From Podarcis filfolensis (taxonomy: Eukaryota): DNA of 64,000 bases. The stretch lies in NCBI GenBank assembly GCA_964270895.1, contig OZ185438.1; one strand, given 5' to 3'. The notes under the pieces are model-generated. The model saw nothing but the letters and a program-made list of their open reading frames with translations. It was not told where the DNA came from and did no database searches. Made by a program: the position numbers and the translations under genes. Below, piece after piece: positions 1-60,057 of the stretch; the stretch's first letter is position 1; each line of letters starts with the position of its first letter.

Positions 1-131
1 TAGTGGGTTCAACCATTGCTGCCACACACTCTCTGTCAGTGCCTCCAGCCATCAGGAAGAATTGCCACAGAAAGAGCAAGAAGAAGAAGAAGAGGGAAGG
101 CAAATTGCACCAGAAAACCAAGAAGATGAAA
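1..131 (+). CDS. CNKSR2: CNKSR2 (CNK2/MAGUIN) coding exon, 5' part outside window
   Basis: Frame from nt 2 reads SGFNHCCHTLSVSASSHQEELPQKEQEEEEEGRQIAPENQEDE, matching human CNK2 'SGFNHCCLNAPVSA...EEEEEEEE'. Ends at a phase-1 donor A|GTAAGC (132). Confidence 0.93.
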
Positions 132-17425: not shown

Positions 17426-20400
17426 ATAACCCCCCCCCCCTTATGGCTCAACAGCCATGGTCTGTCCATCGTAACTGGCATTTTAACTTATTAATTAATC
17501 AAAATTAAAAGGGAAATCAGATTATTGTAACCACAATCGACAGTAACCTAATTTTTTGTTAATTAGATACAAACCCTACCTTATCAGGGAGGCAGGTTGT
17601 GGGTAGGCTCTATGTATATATGAGCTCCCATATCTGTCGATTAAAGTACAGTCATATACATGTGGATGGATAGATAGATGCATCTTATATACGTATATGA
17701 ATGTATGTGTGTTTCTAGAATGTACTTAGTGTTCCTTTAAATTTTTACATAAGCGTGCCAACTCAACCAGGCATAGGACTCATCAAGTGTGAAGATTTTT
17801 TAAACATTCATGTTGATTTTAATTAGAACAATCATACTGGATATGCTGCTGAAGGTGTAAACATAAACAAGACTTCAATTTTCAGTATCATTTTTTTATT
17901 ACAGAAATTAATAGGTGTGTGTGTTTTTTTAAAACAAAAACACAAACATGTTGAGAAGGTTAGGTTTTTCAGTCTAAATCAATGTTTCTCATTTTCTTAG
18001 TACGTAATTTTTGTAATGCACATTAAATAGGAAAATCCTAGTTTATAATTAGATTAAAACTAAATATATGTTGCTTATCATTTTTGTTTAGTTTTATTTT
18101 ATAATTACTGTCACCATTTTAATTTAAATTGAAAAAATCTAGAACTGCATCCTACTAATTTTCTTTCTTTCATCAGAGACCAAGACTTCTAAAGTCTGAT
18201 ACCAGAATAAGTACTATGGGTTTTTTTTTCTTGCGCATGTGTGCATGCAAATAAAAAAAGAGCACTGTGGAGCTAACATCATATGAAAATCTTGCCATAT
18301 ATGCTTTCTCTCTTTATCAAGATTGCATGATTGTATTACTAATGCAATTCTAATATGATATAGTAATAACAGCCCATCACAGTTCTTTCACCATATTGTA
18401 TCACTGCTTTATCATATTAGGCTAAAGCACTGCGAGAGTTGATAGAACCTCCCCATGCCAACTCGGATCCACTTCTCTTGGCACTGAACCGATTGGACTC
18501 AGAGATTGATAAACTATTGGTTAGAGAATTTAGATCGGAGAGAATTGGCACGACGGAGACTCATCTTCAGCCTCTTGCAAGCAACCTCTAATGTCCTGCA
18601 TTCTGAAAGCCAATCAATTCTTCTTGAATAACTGATGTTTTTAAGAAAGAACTGACTTTAAAACATAGACAACCAAATGCCTGGGTAAGGGGCCTCCAGG
18701 AAAGTCTTACAAAGGGCAAACCTCTTGCCAGATCTATTGCTTTTATTTTGAAGAATGCATCCTTTCTACAGAGGGATTAGGCACAATATCAGACCCAGGC
18801 TACATGGAATACAGTTGCAGAAAATACTGCTCACCAACTTGGGAGAAACAGAAGGGGGAAAGGTTGATGGCAGGGGAAGGGCTATGGTGATACTCAGGTG
18901 TGTTCTGCAGTCTTCAAGGAAGGAAAGAGGGATCAGCTGTGGTAACTATAAAATCATATTTTGAAAATATTTTGAAAACTTCAGTTACTTCCATTCATCC
19001 AAAGTGGCAAAAGCTAATACCATTCTTAGTGTATTTCACAGTAGTGAAGGAAGATAACTTGCTGTATAATACTCATTCAATGTATTCTGTCAAGTCCAAG
19101 TGTGCACAGACTGTTGCAAGACCTAAAGCCGAATTCTAACTGTGTTTACTTAGGAGCAAATCCTATTAATTTCAGTGGGATTTAGGCTCAAACTACACAT
19201 GATGGTAGCAGAACCATTTATTTAAATCCACATCTCTACCAAAAATGTCCACAAAGGATGTGAACAGATTCCTTTTTAAAAGCAAAGGTTGTATGCCTTT
19301 GGGGACTGGTGACCCTTTCCTCCATGTGCTGTATCTTCCTGCAGTTTGTCCCACAGGACATTTTATTCTAAGCTGAGCTCCAATTCCAGAAGTGAGCTCA
19401 ATGTGGAGAAGAAAAGGACTGGGGAGAGGCTTTAAGGTGGTTATTAGCAGTGTACATGTGGAAGGTTCAGTTGGCCTAAAAATCACATCCCTACTCCACA
19501 CTTAATATGTAATTGAAGCAGACCTGGGTTTAAATACTGTCATGTGTAGCTTAATCCTTGTTTTCAAGTAAGTGTGCTTAGGATTGCAACAGAGTTTGTT
19601 AAGCAGTTTATAATGATTTATCTGATGGTGCACAAATACTGATTTTATGACAGTTAATATAATGCCTCACTTTGGTGTGTTTCAAACTGCAGATAGAAAT
19701 CTTCAATTTCTCCTTACCTTCTAGGATTTAAATGTGAGTGATGTTGCCTTGCAGCATAGACATAAGGTATTCTCTGTAAATCCTTCAGGATCCCTAGGAG
19801 GCAATTTGGAGGGGCCAAGATTTCGATGGAATGTCTCCCTAAGTAGATTCAGATATTGTCTATCATTATGTTTTGGGTCTCCTATGGATCATTTTTTGCC
19901 TGTATCTCTGTGATTGGATGTGGATTTTCTTTCTATTTTTGGCTAAGGGTGTACTGTAATGTCAATGCTAAATTCTTGATATTTCATACTAATTATGGAG
20001 AGAGAATTTTAAGATGTATTTTGAAATGTTTTATTTCTGTCAGGTCCATGTATGGTATTGCATTATGTTAATACCAATAAAATATATAGAGTTATTTATA
20101 TACAAATGCATATATTTCCCTTTTTATAAAGGTGTTGCAATTTTTTCATAAGGAAATAATACACAGCAGCTGCTTGACAGCAGTAAGAAAACTCTAGAAG
20201 CTTTAATATGCTTGAATAATAATAATAATAAAACCTGTATTCTGTAGGCAGACCAGTAGAAAATGCATGTAATTTTTAAACAAGGTTATTTGACCTGGCA
20301 TAGGTCTGTCAAGATTTGACTATAAATTCAGCTTCCACTATTTTTATGAGCACAGATCTAATGTTCTTGTTTTATCAAAATATGTTGATTATTAGCTGAT

Positions 20401-23400
20401 GTTTAGAAAGTAAAACAATAATCTTTGGACACACTTCATTCAAATATAATCACTTTAGTCCTGCTGATTACATAAGGGAGTTAAGTGCAGGCCTAAGTCC
20501 CATTGAAATCAATGGGGTTTGAAGTGCTTAACTTTGACTGGATTTAGCTGTTTATGGGCTGTTGTGTGGGTTGACTAAAGATACAATCTCCCTGTGTTTT
20601 TTAAATTAATCATATGTTCTAAGAAATTTGCTGTAATTCACTGCTGTTTTGATGCTCAGCAAAAGCAGCCTTCAGTTTTTTTTATAGAGGGTCTATTTTT
20701 TAGGGTTAATAAACTACTACTTAGTGCATAAAGATTTGCAAGCCGGAAGATTTATCACTCAAGCCTAGCTGGATTGGCTTGAAACCTTTACAGTTTATCA
20801 TTAAATTCTGTAATTAGACAGAAATGAAATGTTTTAGAAATGAATCAGGGAGCTAAAAGCTGAGATTAGAATTTAAAGTATCTTCCATTATCAGTTTTCA
20901 GTGATGGCTCATATGTAACACTTCGCCTAAGGCTGAAAGGAGCTGATATTCTGGCACCATTGTGCATTCAAATTTCAGCATGGACGTTTCTGTCCTAAAA
21001 TAGTGTATTGAATGACCATTTCCATTTTGCAGGGATATTCATGGCAGCAGTTAGCTGTCCAAGACATTAATTGCACATATCTTTGTAAAGCTTCTCTGTA
21101 CTACTAAAAATAAAGTTTGTAAAATTCCAGTTATTTTTTTCTTAATGCAAACAGGGTTTTTTTAACAAAGGAAAAAAGAGGTGAATTGCTTTCTACTTTC
21201 TTCCTTGGAGACAGATGTTTCAGTGGTTCTGCTTTGCCGTTTTTTCTTAAGGCCTTTTCTTGTGATGAACCTGGACATTCACCGAATGATTCAGAATGGG
21301 CATATTTCTTTATTGCTTTCTCATACCATTTCTGATGTTACAAACTCAAGTTATAAGTATGCTGAGGATTTTTTTTTGCAAGGGTTATACCTCACTATGA
21401 AAAGCAACAGGAAGGGCTATGCACACAATATATTCAGCATATCACTCAAGTTATTCCTGTGGAAATAACCCACTAAACGCATTGATGCAAAGCAGCATGC
21501 GGCACATTTGGTTTCATTGTAAAGCAATGAACTTGGTTGGTTATCAGTAGCTATTGCCCTCAGTAAAAGTGTGCCCTGCCTCTAAAAACAGATGCATAAT
21601 TCAAAACTACATGGAAGAGCATCATGCTGCGTTGATTGCTTTCAGATGGGACATCTATCTGCCATAAAGTAAGAAACCTATCTACCATGGTGGTAGTCCT
21701 GGAAGCATAACTGGGCCTGTGATGGCACTTGGAGAACTGTGTGGTGCTTAGTAATTTAACCCCTCTATAGAGTTCGCGAAGATATTGCACTATTGGGCTA
21801 TTCAGTGTAAAAGTACATAGATTAGGAGTGCACATTTGTTGGCCTCCTTACAGGGTGCTTTCATGGTTAAATCTATGTACTGTAGTTGCCATGGTGATAC
21901 AACTATTGCTGTGGATCACTTCTGATCCATGAACAGAAGGAGATTTTGTTCACAGAAAGAGAATTGCTCTGACGTTGAAAAGGCCCGTTCTGTGAGCGCA
22001 AGCTTTCTGTGATTACAGAACAAAACATTACGATCAAATATGGTATATATATTACATTTGTGATATGAGTAAAGATTGTGTGCTGAGCATACCTGTACTG
22101 TATTCATAGTTGAATACTTGTCCTAAAAACCTTGGCAGACAAGTGTTACTCAAATTTGACTTGACTAATGTAACCAGCCACCTCCACCATTTGTCATTTA
22201 ACCTTTAGTACAGCCTCATATACGATAACCACATTTCAAGCCACAGATATTTTACTAAAAGAACAATAATTATGTGTCGCTTGTTGTAGGCTTTTCCATA
22301 AGAACAAGATTCTCCCCTTCAAAACTGATTTCCCATAAGGTGATACAAAAAATGAAACAAAGCCCCAACCTATTAATTGCTTACCGTGGTTCTGATTCTA
22401 TCAGCATTAAGTATCAGAGTAGTATTGTATTACCTGATCCCAGAAATAATGGAAACTAAAAACTAATCTGCCATCGAAATGTGGTAGTGATTTTTTAAAA
22501 ATTACTTGAGTTATTTTCCCTACGACTGTAATTGCTTTGTTCACCACTGAAAAATACATGAAATAAACAAGCTGATCTATTTGTTGTATAGTGCTTAAAC
22601 CAAATGAGTTAGGGTAGGTTTATTAATGTTTGCCATTGCACATACATTATTTTGAAGCATATTTGTTTTCTGCTAATTTTCTGTTGATTTTATTTTTATT
22701 ATTTTTCTCTTTTCTTTGTACTTTCTGTCAATAGCTACCTCTTATGACCTTCAGGTAAGAAGCTTGCTTAGTTGTTTCTTTCCTTTGAAATGATGAAGGC
22801 TCAGTGTAGTGTCAATCAGACTGTGCCTCTCCATACTGAAAGCCTTTTATGATGCTTTAAAATGGTTGTTAACCAGGTCGTACCTCAAACCCTTCAACCA
22901 ATTGCACATGACATAATCTCAATTAAGGTAGCTTAAGGGACGGTTGTTCTAAAATGCAATAACTTACAATCTGATAAGCAAATATTATTCATTGCATCTT
23001 TCATCTTTTCTTCCTGAAATTGGAGAATATGATATATTCTTTATTATTTAATTCAAAATTGTTCAAGAAACTAAAATTCAAGGCCCAAACTGTATTGTGA
23101 AAGTTCCAGTTTTAAGACATGTTGGGATGGAACAAGCTCATTGGACACTGATTTCCACTTAGCAATGATTCCAGCATCCTTGTAAGTGGGAAAAGAACTA
23201 AAGGTCAGGGGGTTTGGGGGTGGTAATTTTTCTAGAAATGATTGATTATAATTGCAGTTCCTAAGACCCCAATCACTGAAGGTGGAAAGGGGTAAAGTGA
23301 AACATAAGGATATGAGGGATAGTTGGGGAAAGAGAAAAGGAGTCATTTACCCAGTCCAAGGGCGGCCAGCTATTGCAACCCAGCACAGCTGCTCAGATGC

Positions 23401-24120
23401 GCTTTGGAGCCTTGTCATTGCTGCCCGGCTGTTGGCTGCTCCCCGCCAGCTGCCATGGAGCATCACAGATTCCCGCCTAACCCGTATTTTAATTCAGCCA
23501 ATCTGTGGCAGCCTGGGGGATTGTTTGTCTTTGGTAGTGGACCTGGAGACCACAGTTTTCACTCTGTTCTGTTCTCCAGGCATTAAAGCTGGCTGGCACT
23601 GCACTCTGAAGATGAGTCGGCCAGTATTAGCATGTATAAAGAACCCTGTGGTGGAGCAGAGGCAAGTGAGAAAGTATGACAGGGCACAGGAAAAAATAAG
23701 TGAGCAACACGGGGTGCAGAGAATCCTGTCAGTTTTGGAAAGACAGAAGAGGCAACTATGATGTGATAGACAACATGTGCTATGGAGTGCAGAGAAATAG
23801 GAGGGAGTTTGTGCTGTGGTTTAAAAAAAAAAGGATGGTTAATGTGAAGGGGACCTTGGGGATTCTGAGAAAAAGAGAAAGTAGAAGATATACAATATGA
23901 AACACAGAGAAAGGGGTGCTATCTGATAAGGAAAAGGCTAAATGTGTAGCATAAATGTGTTAAAGTCCATAACTCAGGAGTCAGCCCTCTTGAGTTAATA
24001 AAAATACATAAGCTACCTTTGGTTCTGACCCCTGGTATTTGGCATTTGTGTTTAGTAATACTCCCATTTAGCTCAATCAGCTGGGAATGTAGATTAACAC
24101 ATAAGTAACAGAATAAGTAA

Positions 24121-24477
24121 GGGACACGGGTGGCACTGTGGGTTAAACCACAGAGCCTAGGACTTGCCAATCAGAAGGTCGGTGGTTCGAATCCCTGTGA
24201 CGGGGTTAGTTCCCATTGCTCTGTCCCTGCTCCTGCCAACCTAGCAGTTCGAAAGCACGTCAAAGTGCAAGTAGATAAATAGGTACCGCTCCAGCGAGAA
24301 GGTAAACGGCATTTCCGTGTGCTGCTCTGGTTCGCCAGAAGCGGCTTAGTCATCCTGGCCACATGACCTGGAAGCTGTACACCGGCTCCCTCGGCCAATA
24401 AAGCGAGATGAGCGCCGCAACCCCAGAGTCGGCCACGACTGGACCTAATGGTCAGGGGTCCCTTTACCTTTACCTTT
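24121..24477 (+). mobile_element. Sauria SINE, full length
   Basis: Head GGGACACGGGTGGCACTGTGG, box B GGTTCGAATCC, (ACCTTT)n tail, 13-bp TSD TAACAGAATAAGT (24106-24118, 24477-24489). Confidence 0.93.
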
Positions 24478-24490
24478 AACAGAATAAGTG

Positions 24491-24716
24491 GAATCATAGA
24501 CTCTTGGAATTGGAAGGGACCCAAGGGTCATCTAGACCAACCCCCTGCAAAGCAGGAATCTTAGCTAAAGCATCCATGATGGATGGCCATCCAACCTCTG
24601 TTTAAAAACCTCCAAGGAAGGAGAATCTCGTGGGAGTCTGTTGTACTGCTGAACAGCTCTTACTGTCAGAAAGTTTTTCTGAATGTTTAGTCGGAATCTC
24701 CTTTCTTGCAACTTAA
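24491..24716 (-). mobile_element. CR1 LINE 3' end
   Basis: GAATCATAG...GGAAGGGACCC...CATCTAG.CCAACCCC is the reverse complement of the CR1 terminus. Confidence 0.8.
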
Positions 24717-27241
24717 CTTATTTTATTTTCGTATTATGCCATCCTTGCTATCATTTGCAATACAGCTATTGGGGAAGGATTAAAAAAAAACTGCTGTGAA
24801 AGAGAGTTAGGGTTGTATCTCGGAGCATTTCCTATCTAAAACAAGTTATTTCTTTTTCTTTCTCAAGTTTACAACAATTTCTTATTTTCCACATGACAGA
24901 TTTTACAAACGCTTAATGCAAAATTCTGAAGACTTTGGCCAAAAGTTAAAACTTGCATTGCAGTTCCTCAGTTTCATTCTTGTCATGTTCACACATGACC
25001 AATAAACAAAACTCTAGCAATGGAGCCAAGCTTTACATGTGGGGCAGCCTCAGTTTTTCGGTGGATCAAATGGGACAACATAAACAGGCTAGGTGAAAAG
25101 AGGTGTTCAAGAAGGCACAATCCACTTGCTGCAACTGGTGTCATCAGTGGTCCATACTGTTCTTCTGTGGTGTCTGTAAATAATATAAATCACAGAGTAA
25201 TACTCCTCTGATCATTCCATCGATCAGGCTGGAGATAACAATATCTGAGGATGGAAAACACTAACAAAGCTAGAAGAAAGATAAAACATGTAGGGCTAAT
25301 TTTATGCCAATCCTTCCCCACCCTTTCAGTCTTTTGTGATCAGTATCTCTGTCAATCACATCCACAATATGTCACAAACGCTTTCAGTTGGATCCAGAAT
25401 TAGATGCACAAGCAAAGAGCTCCTCCAGACCATCTTGTTTATGAATCCTGATTTGCTTGTGCAAAGCACAGACGGTTGGTTAGACTGTGTCCAGTTATTA
25501 TTGAGCATTTCTTCTGATTTGTTTGTAAGTTTTATGAAAATATATTCATCTTCATTTGCTTGTGGGGTGTTTATATGTCTTTTCATTGATCAGTTGTACA
25601 TTCCATACTTTTCAATGCATTTCTCTGTCACTTACCTAACTGCAAAAAGTCTGTTATTTTTTTAAGTGTGGATGGGTTGCTGCAGGGGGGAAAGTGCTCT
25701 AATCTACTTCAGCTGCACAAACTTATATATCTCATGTTGTACTTCAGTCCTTCCCACAAAATATTGACAATCTGCAGTTACCCAAATTTATAAAGACTGT
25801 TGTCTTCTTGTCTAGGTCTTGGCTAAAAAAGAAACCAACCCTGACATAGAAGATTAGGATAATTTAACATTTATATATTGCATTCACATACATTGTCTCA
25901 GTGATTCATACAAGATCTCTGAAAGGTAGACCAGTATTAATATCCCCATATTGCACCTGAAGGTTTGAAGCTAAGAAAATAGTAGCTTAGCTAGGGCCAT
26001 GGTTTTGATTTGAATCAGGAACTTCTCAGCTCACATTGTTAGGCACATTTCTACATCAAAATTTTGAATGCAAACCAATTTAGTTTCCATTGCATTTTTA
26101 GGGAAGCACTCCTAAATTATAAAGATGTAGCCACGGCATATATATGATGGCAAGCTGTGAGATGCCATTAACTGTAACTCTCTAGACACATTGTTGTGGT
26201 GGTATGTTTTTGAGGCATTTGGTTATGAATCCTGTCAAATCAAAGCAGAAAGACATATTTGCCTTCCTGATTTCAGTAATTTGTACATTTTAAAAACAAC
26301 AACAACAACTATATTGTATTTGTGCAGACTAGAAAGCAATTCTTGACTTAGATATTTTATTGGAGCATTTTCTGTTTGGAGAAGACACTCTTCCTGCACC
26401 AGTGTGTGTGCACTGATATGTATACGGAGCTCCAGTGGCTCATATATTTCAATTTAAAAGATTTTTGTGGCAGGAACTCTGTGTGCTCATTGAAGCCTGG
26501 TGCCCTCAAAGAGTATAGGATGAAAGTTCTGCAGTGTCATCCTATGTGTGTTTACTTGGAGGTAAATTGAGTTTGGTGGAACTTTCCCCTAAGTAAGAGT
26601 GTTTAGGAATGCAGACTTGATAGGTTAGTCCTCTTCTATTAGATCTTTTTGCCAAGCACAATGGAAGGATTCTTTAGACAGCCTCTCTTCCCTCATGGTT
26701 TGAATTGTGAGCCAATTATAAAATATATATACAGTAGATACATTTCAGCAAACAACACTCCCATTTCAACATGTAACAGGGCAATGGGTGTGCCCTTGGA
26801 AGTGCACAATACAGTTCTCATCACCTGACTTTATACAGTTTTTGCACAATATAGATGATTGACTTTAAATTTGATCTTAATGTGACAAATTAATTCGGAA
26901 GCTGTATATTGATTGTCACATGATTATCTTTTTATATGTACCTGTGCTGGGAATTTGTAACTTACCATGACTTTCCACATTATATATGTATATGTATAGA
27001 AATATATGTATGGGGGAGATATATGCATACACATATATAAATATCTGCATGTTGCAAAATACATGTATGCATGCATAAGGATTGCTCAAGGATTGCTCAA
27101 TCTACACATTCCATGCCTTTTCTGTAAGGAAATAATTTCAGCAAAATTTTGTCATATTTGAATAGTTAAACTTCTTAAGCCTTGTCATGGAATTTAAAAA
27201 GAAACTGATTTAGGCTGATTTTTTTCAAACTATGCAGTTAA

Positions 27242-27463
<222 letters not shown>

Positions 27464-28295
27464 TAATTAGGGGGTCAGCAAATTTCACAAAAGGAGAGTA
27501 TCCTGCATAGAACTCGAGGGATATATTGCACATATTTAAAAACAGACAGGCACTGGGAAATGCTGTACACAAAAGAGGTTCGAAGAAAGAAAGAAAACTT
27601 TAGTTTCTCAACAACAACAAACACGTTTATCTCAGTTCCCATTTTAATGAAGAGTTAATCTGCTTCTGGTCCATTCTGTGGTAAATGAAGACATTATCCA
27701 TAAGCCTGGTGATGTCACAGATATTTAGATACTATCATATTGCTTTGTGTACTTCAGAATATGAAATAATTTTGCCCAGCTTTCAAGATTTCTCATAGCA
27801 GTATAGAATTTTTTATGTATCTAGGTACCATGCTCTGAGAATTCCCTTTTTGCCAATACATAGTAAATAATGTAATGATAAATATATTCCTCAGACACCA
27901 GAAAGAAATCCCTTATGTTCCTTAGCATCTCTTTCTGTTGATATGACAGAGATCCTCTTTATGTTCTATTGCTTGTCATTTTCTGTACCCCCCCCCCGCT
28001 CCCCCCTTGTTCTTCGCTTGTTTCCATCACAGCTACATATACACCACTTTAGAAAAGTTTATTGGGGATGTTCCAAAATCTCAAACCACCACTAATTCAG
28101 AGCAAGCATTCAAATTAGTCAAAACACCAAACAGAGTGGTTTTCAGATTTTTTTTTAGGGAGCTTCCCACTGGTCTTAAAATGAAGCTATTAGGGATTTT
28201 ATCTAGAAATGGCATCTCAAAGTACAATGGTATCTCAGGGATGTTCTTTAAAAGCTTACGGCACAAGACGAAGGGTGCTTTGTTCCTCATTCTGA

Positions 28296-28535
<240 letters not shown>

Positions 28536-28670
28536 AAGAAAATGATTTTGCCTCTTTGTGGCACTTCAGACCTTTATCAAGTACACTGAGTAGCTTTTAT
28601 ATCGACTGACAGGAGATCTATTTTATTGTTTATGATATGAGTAAAGTAAAAATTCCATTGTCATTGTGCG

Positions 28671-55790: not shown

Positions 55791-57624
55791 AACACTTCCA
55801 GCATCCCAGAAAACAGGAACTCAGAAATGGTTTGAATGTTACTAACACTGCCCAGTTTTCTGGGAGTAAGCCCCATTGAATGATGGAGCTTCCTTCTGAG
55901 TAAACACACATCAAATTGTGCTGGCTTGTAGGTTATCAGTGAGAGATAAACAATTCAGTGACTTCAAATTCACGGTGCCAATTACTCTCTGAGAAGTGCT
56001 GGTAAATATGTCAGCTCTAACCGATGTCACTTCAGAATGAAGTAAAGTGTATGTATTATGACGTGAGCCTCCAATTGACTGGTCTTCCAGTGCTGGTTAT
56101 GTTATATGTAATATCAAACAAACACTGGACATGGCAGCTCTTGGGTTGCTGGCAGGTGATTATGTTTTCCTGGAAGTTTTATTTAATGATGGATTGACCT
56201 CAGGGTGCCTCCATCTTTGGCTGTCGAATAAGAGTTGCAATATCAGAAGGTGCAAAAATTACAGAGAGTATTAAACAGGGAGGATCAGGCAAGCTCCAGA
56301 AAGTATTTTCAAGTCCCCTGTGAGAGTCCACAAAGTGATTTTTTAAAAATCCAATTTTATGCCTTTATTTAACTGTGGTAAATAAACTATCTGGATTTTT
56401 TTTTTAATGAGAGAAAATTGTATTCCATTCACATGCTGCGAAGGATTAAAAAAATCCTAAGGGTGAGCTATAGACAGATACTATTCCTTTGCACCATTGC
56501 AATTTAATATTAGGATAAGCAGTTATGTTTATAGTTGAGATTTTGAATAAGGCCTCCATACACGAAGGGCAGAGCTGTGATCCATCACAGTTCAGCTGCA
56601 AAGGAGCAACCTTCTGATGAGGCACCTTCAGCTTTCAGCAACTGACAGAATGGTGCTATTTAACGAGAAGGGTTATTTAACTTAGATACTATGGTTTTTG
56701 TTTTGTTTTTTGTATCTGCCCCAAATCCCAAACTATTCTCAGAACAAAAAATAGCCAAGAAAAGCAATGTTACTCTCCTGCTGTTGAATAAGAGATAAGA
56801 ACATATTGTGAATTTACATTATTAGTAAAAAGGAAAGGGGGGGGCAGGAAGGAAATATGTTTCTGGTTGTCAGGGAAACCCAGAAGGCCAAATTATGAAC
56901 AGAGCTGAACAGTTTCCATAGCTTTGATACTTAAATGAGAAAATGACTAGATTCATTTCTCCAAATGAGATTCCTAGAAGGAGGCAGAGATGAAGAGAGA
57001 TGCATTAAGGCTGTCGTGGCTAAATAGAACTAAAAATGACAAACTTTGAATAAAAAGGTCCAAACGAAAGTGACATCTAAAGGTTCTGGTCACGCATAGC
57101 TCAGTAAAACCAACCGCAAGGAAGCTTTTTATACTATATTTAATAATTAGATCTTGAGCGCCTCCTTGAGGAACCAACAAGTCCTGCAGATCAGAGCAGC
57201 TTCTGCTGCTGAATTCAGCTGTCCTTAAAGAAACATTTCCAGGGTAGGTTTACTGATCATTAGTCCTGATTTGTTTGCAGGGAAATTAGATGAAGTTGGC
57301 TATTTAAATGAGAATTTAATCATTAGTCCTGATTTGTTTGCAGGGATGTTATGTTATTCCACACATTCAACTGCATGTTCCCTGGGGGAAGTACGTTGGT
57401 TGTGCAAGACCTCAAAACCAACTATAACTGTGCAACCTGAATTTGCCGGTATGTGACTCAATCCCACCTGACAATAAGACAGCGTGGAAGCACCCTGGGT
57501 CAAGGAAAGAAAACACAACGATGCTTCCAGTGTATCCTAGCCACTAGCTCAAGCTCAAACTCTTTGGAACAGAGGCTATTCCATGAGGAATTCATACTGC
57601 AGGTATGCTTTCAATGAATATAAA

Positions 57625-57946
57625 AGGTAAAGGGACCCCTGACCATTAGGTCCAGTCGTGACCAACTCTGGGGTTGCAGCGCTCATCTCGCTTTATTGGC
57701 CGAGGGAGCTGGCGTACAGCTTCCAGGTCATGTGGCCAGCATGACAAAGCCGCTTCTGGCAAACCAGAGCAGTGCACGGAAACGCTGTTTATCTACTTGC
57801 ACTTTGACATGCTTTCAAACTGCTAGGTTGGCAGGAGCTGGGACCGAGCAACGGGAGCTCACCCCGTCACGGGGATTCGAACCGCCAATCTTCTGATCAG
57901 CAAGTCCTAGGCTCTGTGGTTTAACCCACAGCGCCACCCGCATCCC
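57625..57946 (-). mobile_element. Sauria SINE with 27-nt internal deletion
   Basis: Reverse complement of the 24121 element; 18-bp TSD TTCAATGAATATAAAAGG (57610-57627, 57947-57964). Confidence 0.93.
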
Positions 57947-58342
57947 TTCAATGAATATAAAAGGGTCTAAATGTGTGTGCACCAGCAGCTACACAGTATG
58001 AAAGGATACCATTTCTGGGACTAGGTGTCTGATTTGGATACATGTTTTGAAAAATGCAAGGCTCTCAGTAAATATGACTCAGCTGAAATAGCCCATGTGA
58101 TGACTCGTGATTTTGACCCATACAATGCATCAGGACAGTTTCTCCAGCTATTATAGATGCAATACTAGCACGAATTAATACATGTGCAGTCTTCAGAAGA
58201 ACATAAGAATCTGACTGATGCCAAGTCTGTTCCTTTGCTCTATCAACCTCAGCAGCTCTCTAGGATTTCTTCCCACTGCAACCCCACCCCACCCCACACT
58301 ACATGGGCACCCAACTCTCTGAAGAGTGTTGGGTGCCCATGT

Positions 58343-58945: not shown

Positions 58946-59669
58946 TGAAGAGGTTTCTCAGGCCTGCAGTGGAAAGAAGGGACTACAAGGAAGTCCGCTT
59001 CCACAAGCTTCTACTTCTCAGAATCCAAGCCGCTCATTCCATTGCTTATACTTGCATCCACGTGGGTAGTATTTCCTTTGATTCTGAAGGAACAACCTCT
59101 TGCCCATGAGGGCTGAAATCATGTCAGTTCCTATATATTCTTTTCCCCTGACAAGCGGGAGTTCCATTGCTGTTGGGGTTGCTGTTTTCACCCTTTTATG
59201 TTTGTATGGGGGGGGGGAGAAAGCTCATTCTCACTGAGCACTTTTGGAGCCAGGGTTGCAGCTATTACAAAGTGCAGATGTAGGCAAGCCACTCTCTCCC
59301 TGGTCTGTTTGTCTGAAGAAGAAGCAAGAGCTTTTCCTCCTAAGTGCACTTACATTATTATTGTTTGTGCTATATGAACAGTTTCGTATGGCCGAGCTTG
59401 GCGTAATAGCAATTTGGAACGAAGCTTCCTCCTAGGCAGCAAATGGCATAAAGGACAAACACAACTCAAAGCTGCAGGCCTGCTTTTACATATTACTGAG
59501 GGAATAAACAGGCCTTTTCAAAGCCAAAGAAAGGTTAACATTCCCTCCCCACCCTACATGAAAGCAATTAGGAGTTCAACTCTTTCCAGGCCTGAATTGT
59601 GAACTTCAGATTTAGCCATCAATGTCTGACAATGACAACTGGCAAAGGCATACTGGTGCCAGTGCGGTG

Positions 59670-60057
59670 GACGCAGGTGGCACTGTGGTCTAAACCACAG
59701 AGCCTCTTGGGCTTGCTGATTAGAAGGTCAGAGGTTTGAACCCCCACGACGGGGTGAGCTCCCATTGCTCTGTCGCAGCTCCTGCCAACCTAGCAGTTCG
59801 AAAGCACACCAGTGCAAGTAGACAAATAGGTACTGCTGTGGTGGGAACGTAAAAGGTGTTTCTGTGCACTCTGGTTTCCATCATGGTGTTCCGTTGCACC
59901 AGAAGCAGTTTAGTCATGCTGGCTACATGACCCGGAAAGCTGTCTGTGGACAAACGCCGGCTCCCTTGACCTGAAGTGAGATGAGCGCCGCAACACCATA
60001 GTCGCCCTTGACTGGATTTACCCGTCCAGGGGTCCTTTACCTTTTACCTTTTTACCT
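59670..60057 (+). mobile_element. Sauria SINE (longer subfamily variant) inserted in the head of a CORE-like SINE
   Basis: GACGCAGGTGGCACTGTGG head and CCAGGGGTCC(TTTACC)n tail. Confidence 0.9.

Follow-up and report, generated by a model that had tools for sequence, protein, structure and literature searches.

Here we describe a squamate-conserved, exon-like element in the intron of CNKSR2 at which the choice between the short form (CNK2B) and the long form (CNK2A) is made. The element contains a 20-nt candidate exon, and the best explanation, which we put forward tentatively, is that of a regulatory pseudo-exon whose 20 nt stay mostly out of the mRNA. CNKSR2 is a synaptic scaffold gene, the short and long 3' isoforms of which differ in PDZ binding, cytohesin/ARF6 signalling and mRNA localisation. 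If the intron concerned carries a conserved element of splice-factor-like character, this would provide a concrete handle on isoform choice in reptiles. It is presented here as a lineage-restricted conserved element with a putative role and not as a demonstrated new isoform.

The analysed stretch of DNA (the window) comprises 64,000 nt of Podarcis filfolensis contig OZ185438.1 (assembly GCA_964270895.1). Its positions 1-28535 were assigned to the 3' end of the squamate CNKSR2 (CNK2/MAGUIN) gene, because the C-terminal exons matched named CNKSR2 proteins in a protein search (including a Phrynosoma fragment at 94% identity), and because the tail-to-tail neighbour located downstream on the minus strand is, in orthologous loci, the BTB/BACK/Kelch gene KLHL34. 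Some of the protein matches (P0036, P0038, P0069, P0070 and P0075) look mammalian and may be human. The exons identified in this part of the gene are the following:

1-131, plus strand: 3' portion of the CNKSR2 exon that precedes the isoform-deciding intron ('exon 20' in mouse), ending in phase 1
18421-20100, plus strand: putative alternative last exon of the CNK2B/MAGUIN-2 type, with the acceptor TATTAG/GC TAA (giving Ser and a stop) and a 3'UTR extending to the AATAAA at 20076
27261-27457, plus strand: 197-nt penultimate coding exon (exon 21), covered by RNA contigs
28320-28535, plus strand: last coding exon, starting with GCCAGAG and ending with ETHV (the PDZ ligand) and a stop codon

The 3' end of exon 20 reads ...AAGATGAAA and closes with GAA GAT GAA A at the donor AAA/GTAAGC, from which the intron extends over 27.1 kb. 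The same junction is found in the bird fragments P0032 and P0054, with the sequence NQEDK/IETIEEK in P0032. Exon 21 starts with CTGAAACC..., and the GT..AG joint leading from 27457 to 28320 was present in all four RNA-like runs.

The short form CNK2B/MAGUIN-2 has 898 aa compared with 1034 aa for the long form (PMC8774548). In mouse, exon 20 is spliced either to a short last exon or onward, and this choice is regulated, the two resulting mRNAs differing in localisation (PMC8820740). The 898-aa end lies one residue past the exon-20 junction, and partial models of bird genes end with QEDKS, matching the short form. The exon at 18421 is likely to be the orthologue of this alternative last exon. 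Its acceptor and the following GCTAA are invariant in five species. Over the acceptor, the stop and approximately 2.7 kb of 3'UTR (to about 21180), conservation amounts to 77-95% in the lizards, the snake and the lark, and none of the species compared (lizards, snake, alligator and lark) has lost the AATAAA at 20076. A truncated CNKSR2 protein has its own conserved route via this exon, and the 20-nt exon is not that route. A protein-like frame of 56 codons at 18421-18591 is probably conserved, non-coding 3'UTR, since the lark sequence has a 16-nt deletion inside it and is without the stop position, the surrounding bases being nearly invariant; a Phrynocephalus gene model nevertheless ends at the stop of this frame. 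The possibility that the conserved block at the candidate exon belongs to the 3'UTR of the short isoform was considered unlikely, the conserved AATAAA signals being those at 20076 to 21109, with the AATAAA at 22562 not conserved.

The candidate exon and its surroundings have the following anatomy:

22642-22763, plus strand: squamate-conserved island of about 120 nt holding the candidate exon, defined by cross-species alignment
22658-22732, plus strand: AG-free, U-rich tract of 75 nt (77% pyrimidine) with a branch-point-like TGCTAAT at 22671-22677 and PTB/ELAV-like U/C runs
22735-22754, plus strand: candidate exon of 20 nt, TAG/CTACCTCTTATGACCTTCAG/GTAAGA
22755-22763, plus strand: near-consensus 5' splice-site sequence, GTAAGAAGC, scoring 7.1-7.2 bits with the preceding CAG
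22773-22800, plus strand: downstream pyrimidine-rich stretch, TGTTTCTTTCCTTTGAAATG..., conserved in Phrynosoma, partly conserved in Crotalus and deleted in Phrynocephalus

Re-reading of the sequence bore out the preliminary description of this DNA in its coordinates and phases, in the extent of the tract, in the position of TGCTAAT (from 22671) and in the TAG and GTAAGA that enclose the 20 nt. The tract is also free of AG in the aligned sequences of Phrynosoma, Phrynocephalus and Crotalus. U/C runs of this kind are known as binding motifs of PTB and ELAV proteins, which may thus bind here. The last three bases of the candidate exon (CAG) form, together with the next GT, a zero-length AG/GT site.

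Splice sites were scored with an approximate PWM. The candidate donor reached 7.1 bits, and only two donors of this strength are present in the 27.1-kb intron. The candidate acceptor reached 1.8 bits, compared with 5.8 and 10.0 for the two real acceptors, and 100 intronic AGs score at least as high. About 0.4 acceptor/donor pairs like the candidate are expected from motif counts, and two were found in the intron, which also contains eight AG-free tracts of at least 75 nt. These values are suggestive, and the sequence alone lifts the candidate exon above chance only modestly; what raises it further is that exactly this spot is conserved across species. Strong donors are rare throughout the region, with only one or two each in the window, Phrynosoma and Crotalus, and CAG/GTAAGA is among them.

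Conservation was examined using orthologous DNA from partial gene models of six species (Phrynosoma platyrhinos, Phrynocephalus forsythii, Crotalus adamanteus, alligator and two birds), so that four squamates were compared in total, the window species included. In the KLHL34 CDS the three other squamates are 81-86% identical to the window species; they are about equally distant from it, and the tree gave no resolved branching order. Compared with the window, the island has changed least in Phrynosoma (88% identity), followed by Phrynocephalus (83%) and Crotalus (72%). For the upstream 93 nt, the exon and the 9 nt of the donor, respectively, the values are 87, 95 and 78% in Phrynosoma, 87, 65 and 78% in Phrynocephalus, and 71, 70 and 78% in Crotalus. 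Neither of the two lizards shows a gap in the alignment of the upstream 93 nt or of the exon. Outside the island, identity drops to 23-51% and the flanks are unalignable. The island is about as conserved as coding sequence (81-86% for the KLHL34 CDS, 76-87% for exon 21 with its flanks), and exact matches of at least 17 nt to other lizards occur within 21200-27200 at two places only, namely the island and a block at 22185-22207. This pattern argues that the island is not random intron and is under constraint, the spot being probably functional. The constraint does not appear to act on the exon as such, as is suggested by the U-rich upstream part being better kept than the exon body in Phrynocephalus.

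A conserved non-coding block at 22150-22210 (ATTTGACT..TGACTAATGTA...CCATTTGTCATTTAACCTTT), situated 450 nt upstream of the candidate exon, is common to two lizards and alligator.

The preliminary description had made its proposal depend on the conservation of the 20-nt length and of the splice sites in related squamates. In Phrynosoma both are fully retained (AATAG/20 nt/GTAAGA, with CAG/GTAAGA kept and one substitution). Phrynocephalus has retained the AG, the GT and the length (CACTAG/20 nt/GTAAAA), but its donor is crippled (CAC/GTAAAA, -1.5 bits) and the exon has changed at 7 of its 20 bases. Crotalus has lost the AG (AATGG) and has 18 nt, but TTCAG/GTAAGAA at the donor is identical to the window. 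The peptide encoded in the three lizards reads TTSYDLQ (window), TISYDLQ (Phrynosoma) and TIFYDGH (Phrynocephalus, differing at four of the seven residues), and the snake version contains a stop. Conservation in birds, also raised in the preliminary description, was not found: the island is undetectable in alligator and in birds, where the best local alignment was no better than that of shuffled queries. The candidate differs in this respect from SRRM4-type neuronal microexons (3-27 nt), which show deep vertebrate conservation and a UGC near the 3' splice site; here the nearest TGC lies 64 nt upstream of the AG.

Taken as a regulatory pseudo-exon, the element would comprise, in this order, a CTAAT resembling a branch point, a U-rich tract of about 60 nt, an AG, 20 nt and CAG/GTAAGA. 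The island lies exactly where the splice-like motifs are, and it is on the sense strand of the pre-mRNA that both the pyrimidine bias and the donor consensus are found. The sense-strand bias, together with the perfect donor motif, points to a role at the RNA level. In all species the best-kept part is the U-rich tract, whereas one lineage is without the AG and another without the donor, and the exon body has drifted. This pattern agrees more closely with a pseudo-exon that binds splicing factors than with a coding exon. A cryptic poison cassette, an intronic element of the calcitonin type and a zero-length recursive site are among the forms that it could take. The pseudo-exon could act as a platform for splicing factors, with U2AF/PTB-type proteins on the tract and U1 snRNP on the donor, and might influence the processing of the 27-kb intron downstream of the alternative last exon, while being itself largely excluded from mature mRNA. 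That mature-mRNA evidence for the 20 nt was not found among the contigs and protein fragments described below counts weakly for the pseudo-exon. Against it stands the nearby block at 22150-22210, which looks like an ordinary non-coding conserved element, so that the island could be a DNA-level enhancer. No Rfam family matched the element, either at the gathering threshold or at E<=1, and no convincing structure was found: the consensus fold comprises only a 6-bp stem, pairing exon bases with the donor and including one compensatory pair, which is too weak to claim. A C/D-box look-alike (ATGATGA at 22789) was rejected, as it is not conserved.

A genuine alternative cassette, i.e. a poison or truncating microexon that some neuronal mRNAs would carry in front of the 197-nt exon, is unlikely, although many of the observations suit it. 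Recomputation of the frames agreed with the preliminary description. Both 20 and 197 are 2 mod 3, so that the frame is kept only when one of the two exons is used singly, as in a mutually exclusive pair; inclusion of both leads to LKP and a stop, and omission of both shifts the frame. Along the path 131-22735-27261, LKP is followed by a TAG at 27270-27272, located 185 nt before the 27457/28320 junction and thus more than 50-55 nt ahead of the last exon junction, as in poison exons. Inclusion, when it happened, would shift the frame to this stop and should make the message a target of NMD; the product would otherwise be a CNK2B-like protein ending ...TTSYDLQLKP, without the C-terminal region. 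With the 20 nt included ahead of exon 21, translation in each of the three lizards (the window species, Phrynosoma and Phrynocephalus) would end at the tenth codon, where the Ile/Leu-Glu/Gly codons of exon 21 make the shared TAG unavoidable. The AG, the GT and the 20-nt length kept in these three species, the conserved flanking intron (typical of regulated cassette exons) and the strong donor are also in favour of a cassette, as is an architecture like that of PTB-repressed neural microexons, in which the branch point is distant, the tract is long and the exon is flanked by pyrimidine runs. Moreover, a gene predictor used the candidate donor in Phrynosoma, where a 'hypothetical protein' starts at an ATG inside the candidate exon. 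The other exons of this protein are not conserved, which identifies it as an ab initio model; all it indicates is that the donor appealed to a predictor.

The cassette is opposed by the weak acceptor, by the crippled donor of Phrynocephalus and the lost acceptor of Crotalus, and by the fact that CNKSR2 already truncates via a conserved alternative last exon. The RNA evidence was sought in four RNA-like Logan contig sets from three organisms, over the stretch 22600-28560 (exon 20 lies outside it). Intronic coverage was low in all four runs. Among the joints listed (depth at least about 39), none used 22735 or 22754 in the four sets. The depth limit was set by the abundant SINE at 24119-24477, and a further 35 joints and 835 loose ends fall below it. 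The result is a weak negative for this reason, and also because rare variants are dropped from contigs, placing a 20-nt piece is difficult and NMD targets are scarce. Similarly, the candidate peptide (SYDLQ-like) occurs in none of 181 CNKSR2 fragments collected by a representative search with the last exon and two word searches, a weak negative too, since squamate transcripts are nearly absent from the collection. A word search with the exon-20 peptide yielded no candidates, and a literature search retrieved no paper on an exon at this place. The earlier proposal of a poison or mutually exclusive exon is supported in part, by its poison arithmetic and by the conservation of the spot in lizards, whereas the in-frame isoform is disfavoured, its peptide not being conserved.

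The island might instead be a DNA-level conserved non-coding element, e.g. a neuronal enhancer, in which the splice-like motifs are coincidental. This explanation, which we judge improbable, draws on the clearly non-exonic block 450 nt upstream, conserved back to alligator, and on the exon-defining signals not being uniformly kept. It is less easily reconciled with the strand-biased composition (77% pyrimidine) and the 12-nt perfect donor motif common to the snake, both unusual for transcription-factor clusters, or with the small chance that the best splice-like pair of the intron would fall within the approximately 1% of its sequence that is conserved.

There is also a low probability that the CAG/GT at 22754/22755 functions as a recursive splice site. 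Exon 20 would be joined to it first, regenerating a donor (AAA/GTAAGA), and the second step would lead to 27261, leaving no trace in the mRNA; the absence of the exon from mRNA would thereby be explained. A pyrimidine tract followed by an AG/GTAAG that regenerates a donor is found in the window, Phrynosoma and Crotalus, all of which have kept the tract and CAG/GTAAGA, and the regenerated AAA/GTAAGA resembles the native donor AAA/GTAAGC. In Crotalus, which lacks the upstream AG, the CAG is the first AG after the tract, with a branch-like UUAAU motif 21 nt ahead of it. In Phrynosoma the CAG scores 5.2 bits as an acceptor, compared with 1.8 for the upstream TAG, and the window shares the 16 bases before the CAG. 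However, the motif is lost in Phrynocephalus (CAC/GTAAAA), the TAG located 20 nt upstream should be met first in the lizards, and a 27-kb intron is short compared with those of known vertebrate recursive sites. With an equally low probability, a stepping-stone site placed just past the CNK2B last exon would, if used early, delete that exon, so that the transcript could only yield CNK2A, the long, PDZ-binding form with dendritic localisation; the 20-nt poison product would arise if the upstream TAG were used instead.

A functionless chance pair of splice-like motifs is very improbable: about 0.4 such pairs would be expected per intron from motif counts, but chance does not account for coding-level conservation across deeply diverged squamates between unalignable flanks. 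Hardly credible is an in-frame, mutually exclusive coding exon, by which the path 131-22735-28320 would replace 66 codons of the 197-nt exon with TTSYDLQ and keep ETHV; its arithmetic is right, the frame being shifted when both exons are in or both out, and the translation (EDE-TTSYDLQ-AREEEV...ETHV and a stop) was reproduced as first given, but the peptide is not conserved and is interrupted by a stop in the snake, the two exons are alike in neither sequence nor size, the joint from 22754 to 28320 is absent among those listed, and none of the 181 fragments carries the peptide fused to AREEEV.

Several known systems resemble the putative pseudo-exon. The N1 exon of c-src (18 nt) is a PTB-repressed neural microexon that is in frame and seen in mRNA. 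It shares with the candidate the tiny size, the distant branch point, the long upstream U/C tract, the downstream pyrimidine run, the strong donor and a neuron-specific host gene; unlike N1, the candidate shifts the frame, and its signals are lost in the snake and weakened in the agamid. The calcitonin/CGRP gene reportedly contains an intronic pseudo-exon enhancer, said to have been described by Lou, Gagel and Berget in 1996, in which a pyrimidine tract and a 5' splice-site sequence lie downstream of an alternative last exon. The likeness consists in a conserved pyrimidine tract followed by CAG/GTAAG in the intron past such an exon, outside the mRNA. That element is, however, situated about 170 nt after the poly(A) site, whereas the CNKSR2 element lies 1.5-2.6 kb past conserved AATAAA signals, a large distance for a polyadenylation enhancer of the calcitonin type. 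The recursive sites, or zero-nucleotide exons, of long neuronal introns have in common with it the (Y)n CAG/GTAAG motif, the regenerated donor and the lack of a trace in mRNA; they differ in that the CNKSR2 intron is only 27 kb long, that an upstream TAG competes in the lizards and that Phrynocephalus has lost the motif. CNK2B/MAGUIN-2 itself arises from the same intron and likewise lacks the C-terminal region and the PDZ ligand, but it ends one residue past the junction, whereas use of the 20-nt exon would add a tail of 10 residues and make the message prone to NMD.

Some further observations were made in the RNA contigs. In run X6, the bin 22600-22798 has a mean contig depth of 8.88 and the next six bins are at zero; the U-rich tract may have drawn a low-complexity match there, or the depth may stem from the element itself. 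A SINE-like repeat at 24119-24477 reaches an extreme abundance (summed depth 1e4 to 4e5) among the RNA contigs of each of the four runs. It matched no Rfam family and has two further copies in the window, at 57623-57948 (minus strand) and 59669-60051 (plus strand), which are 85% and 75% identical, respectively. The main CNKSR2 mRNA contig of run X6 (depth 40) extends beyond the 197-nt exon into 96 nt of the upstream intron (27165-27260) without joining the previous exon, and upstream read-through at this exon is also seen in one Phrynosoma model and in one further RNA contig protein (P0033).
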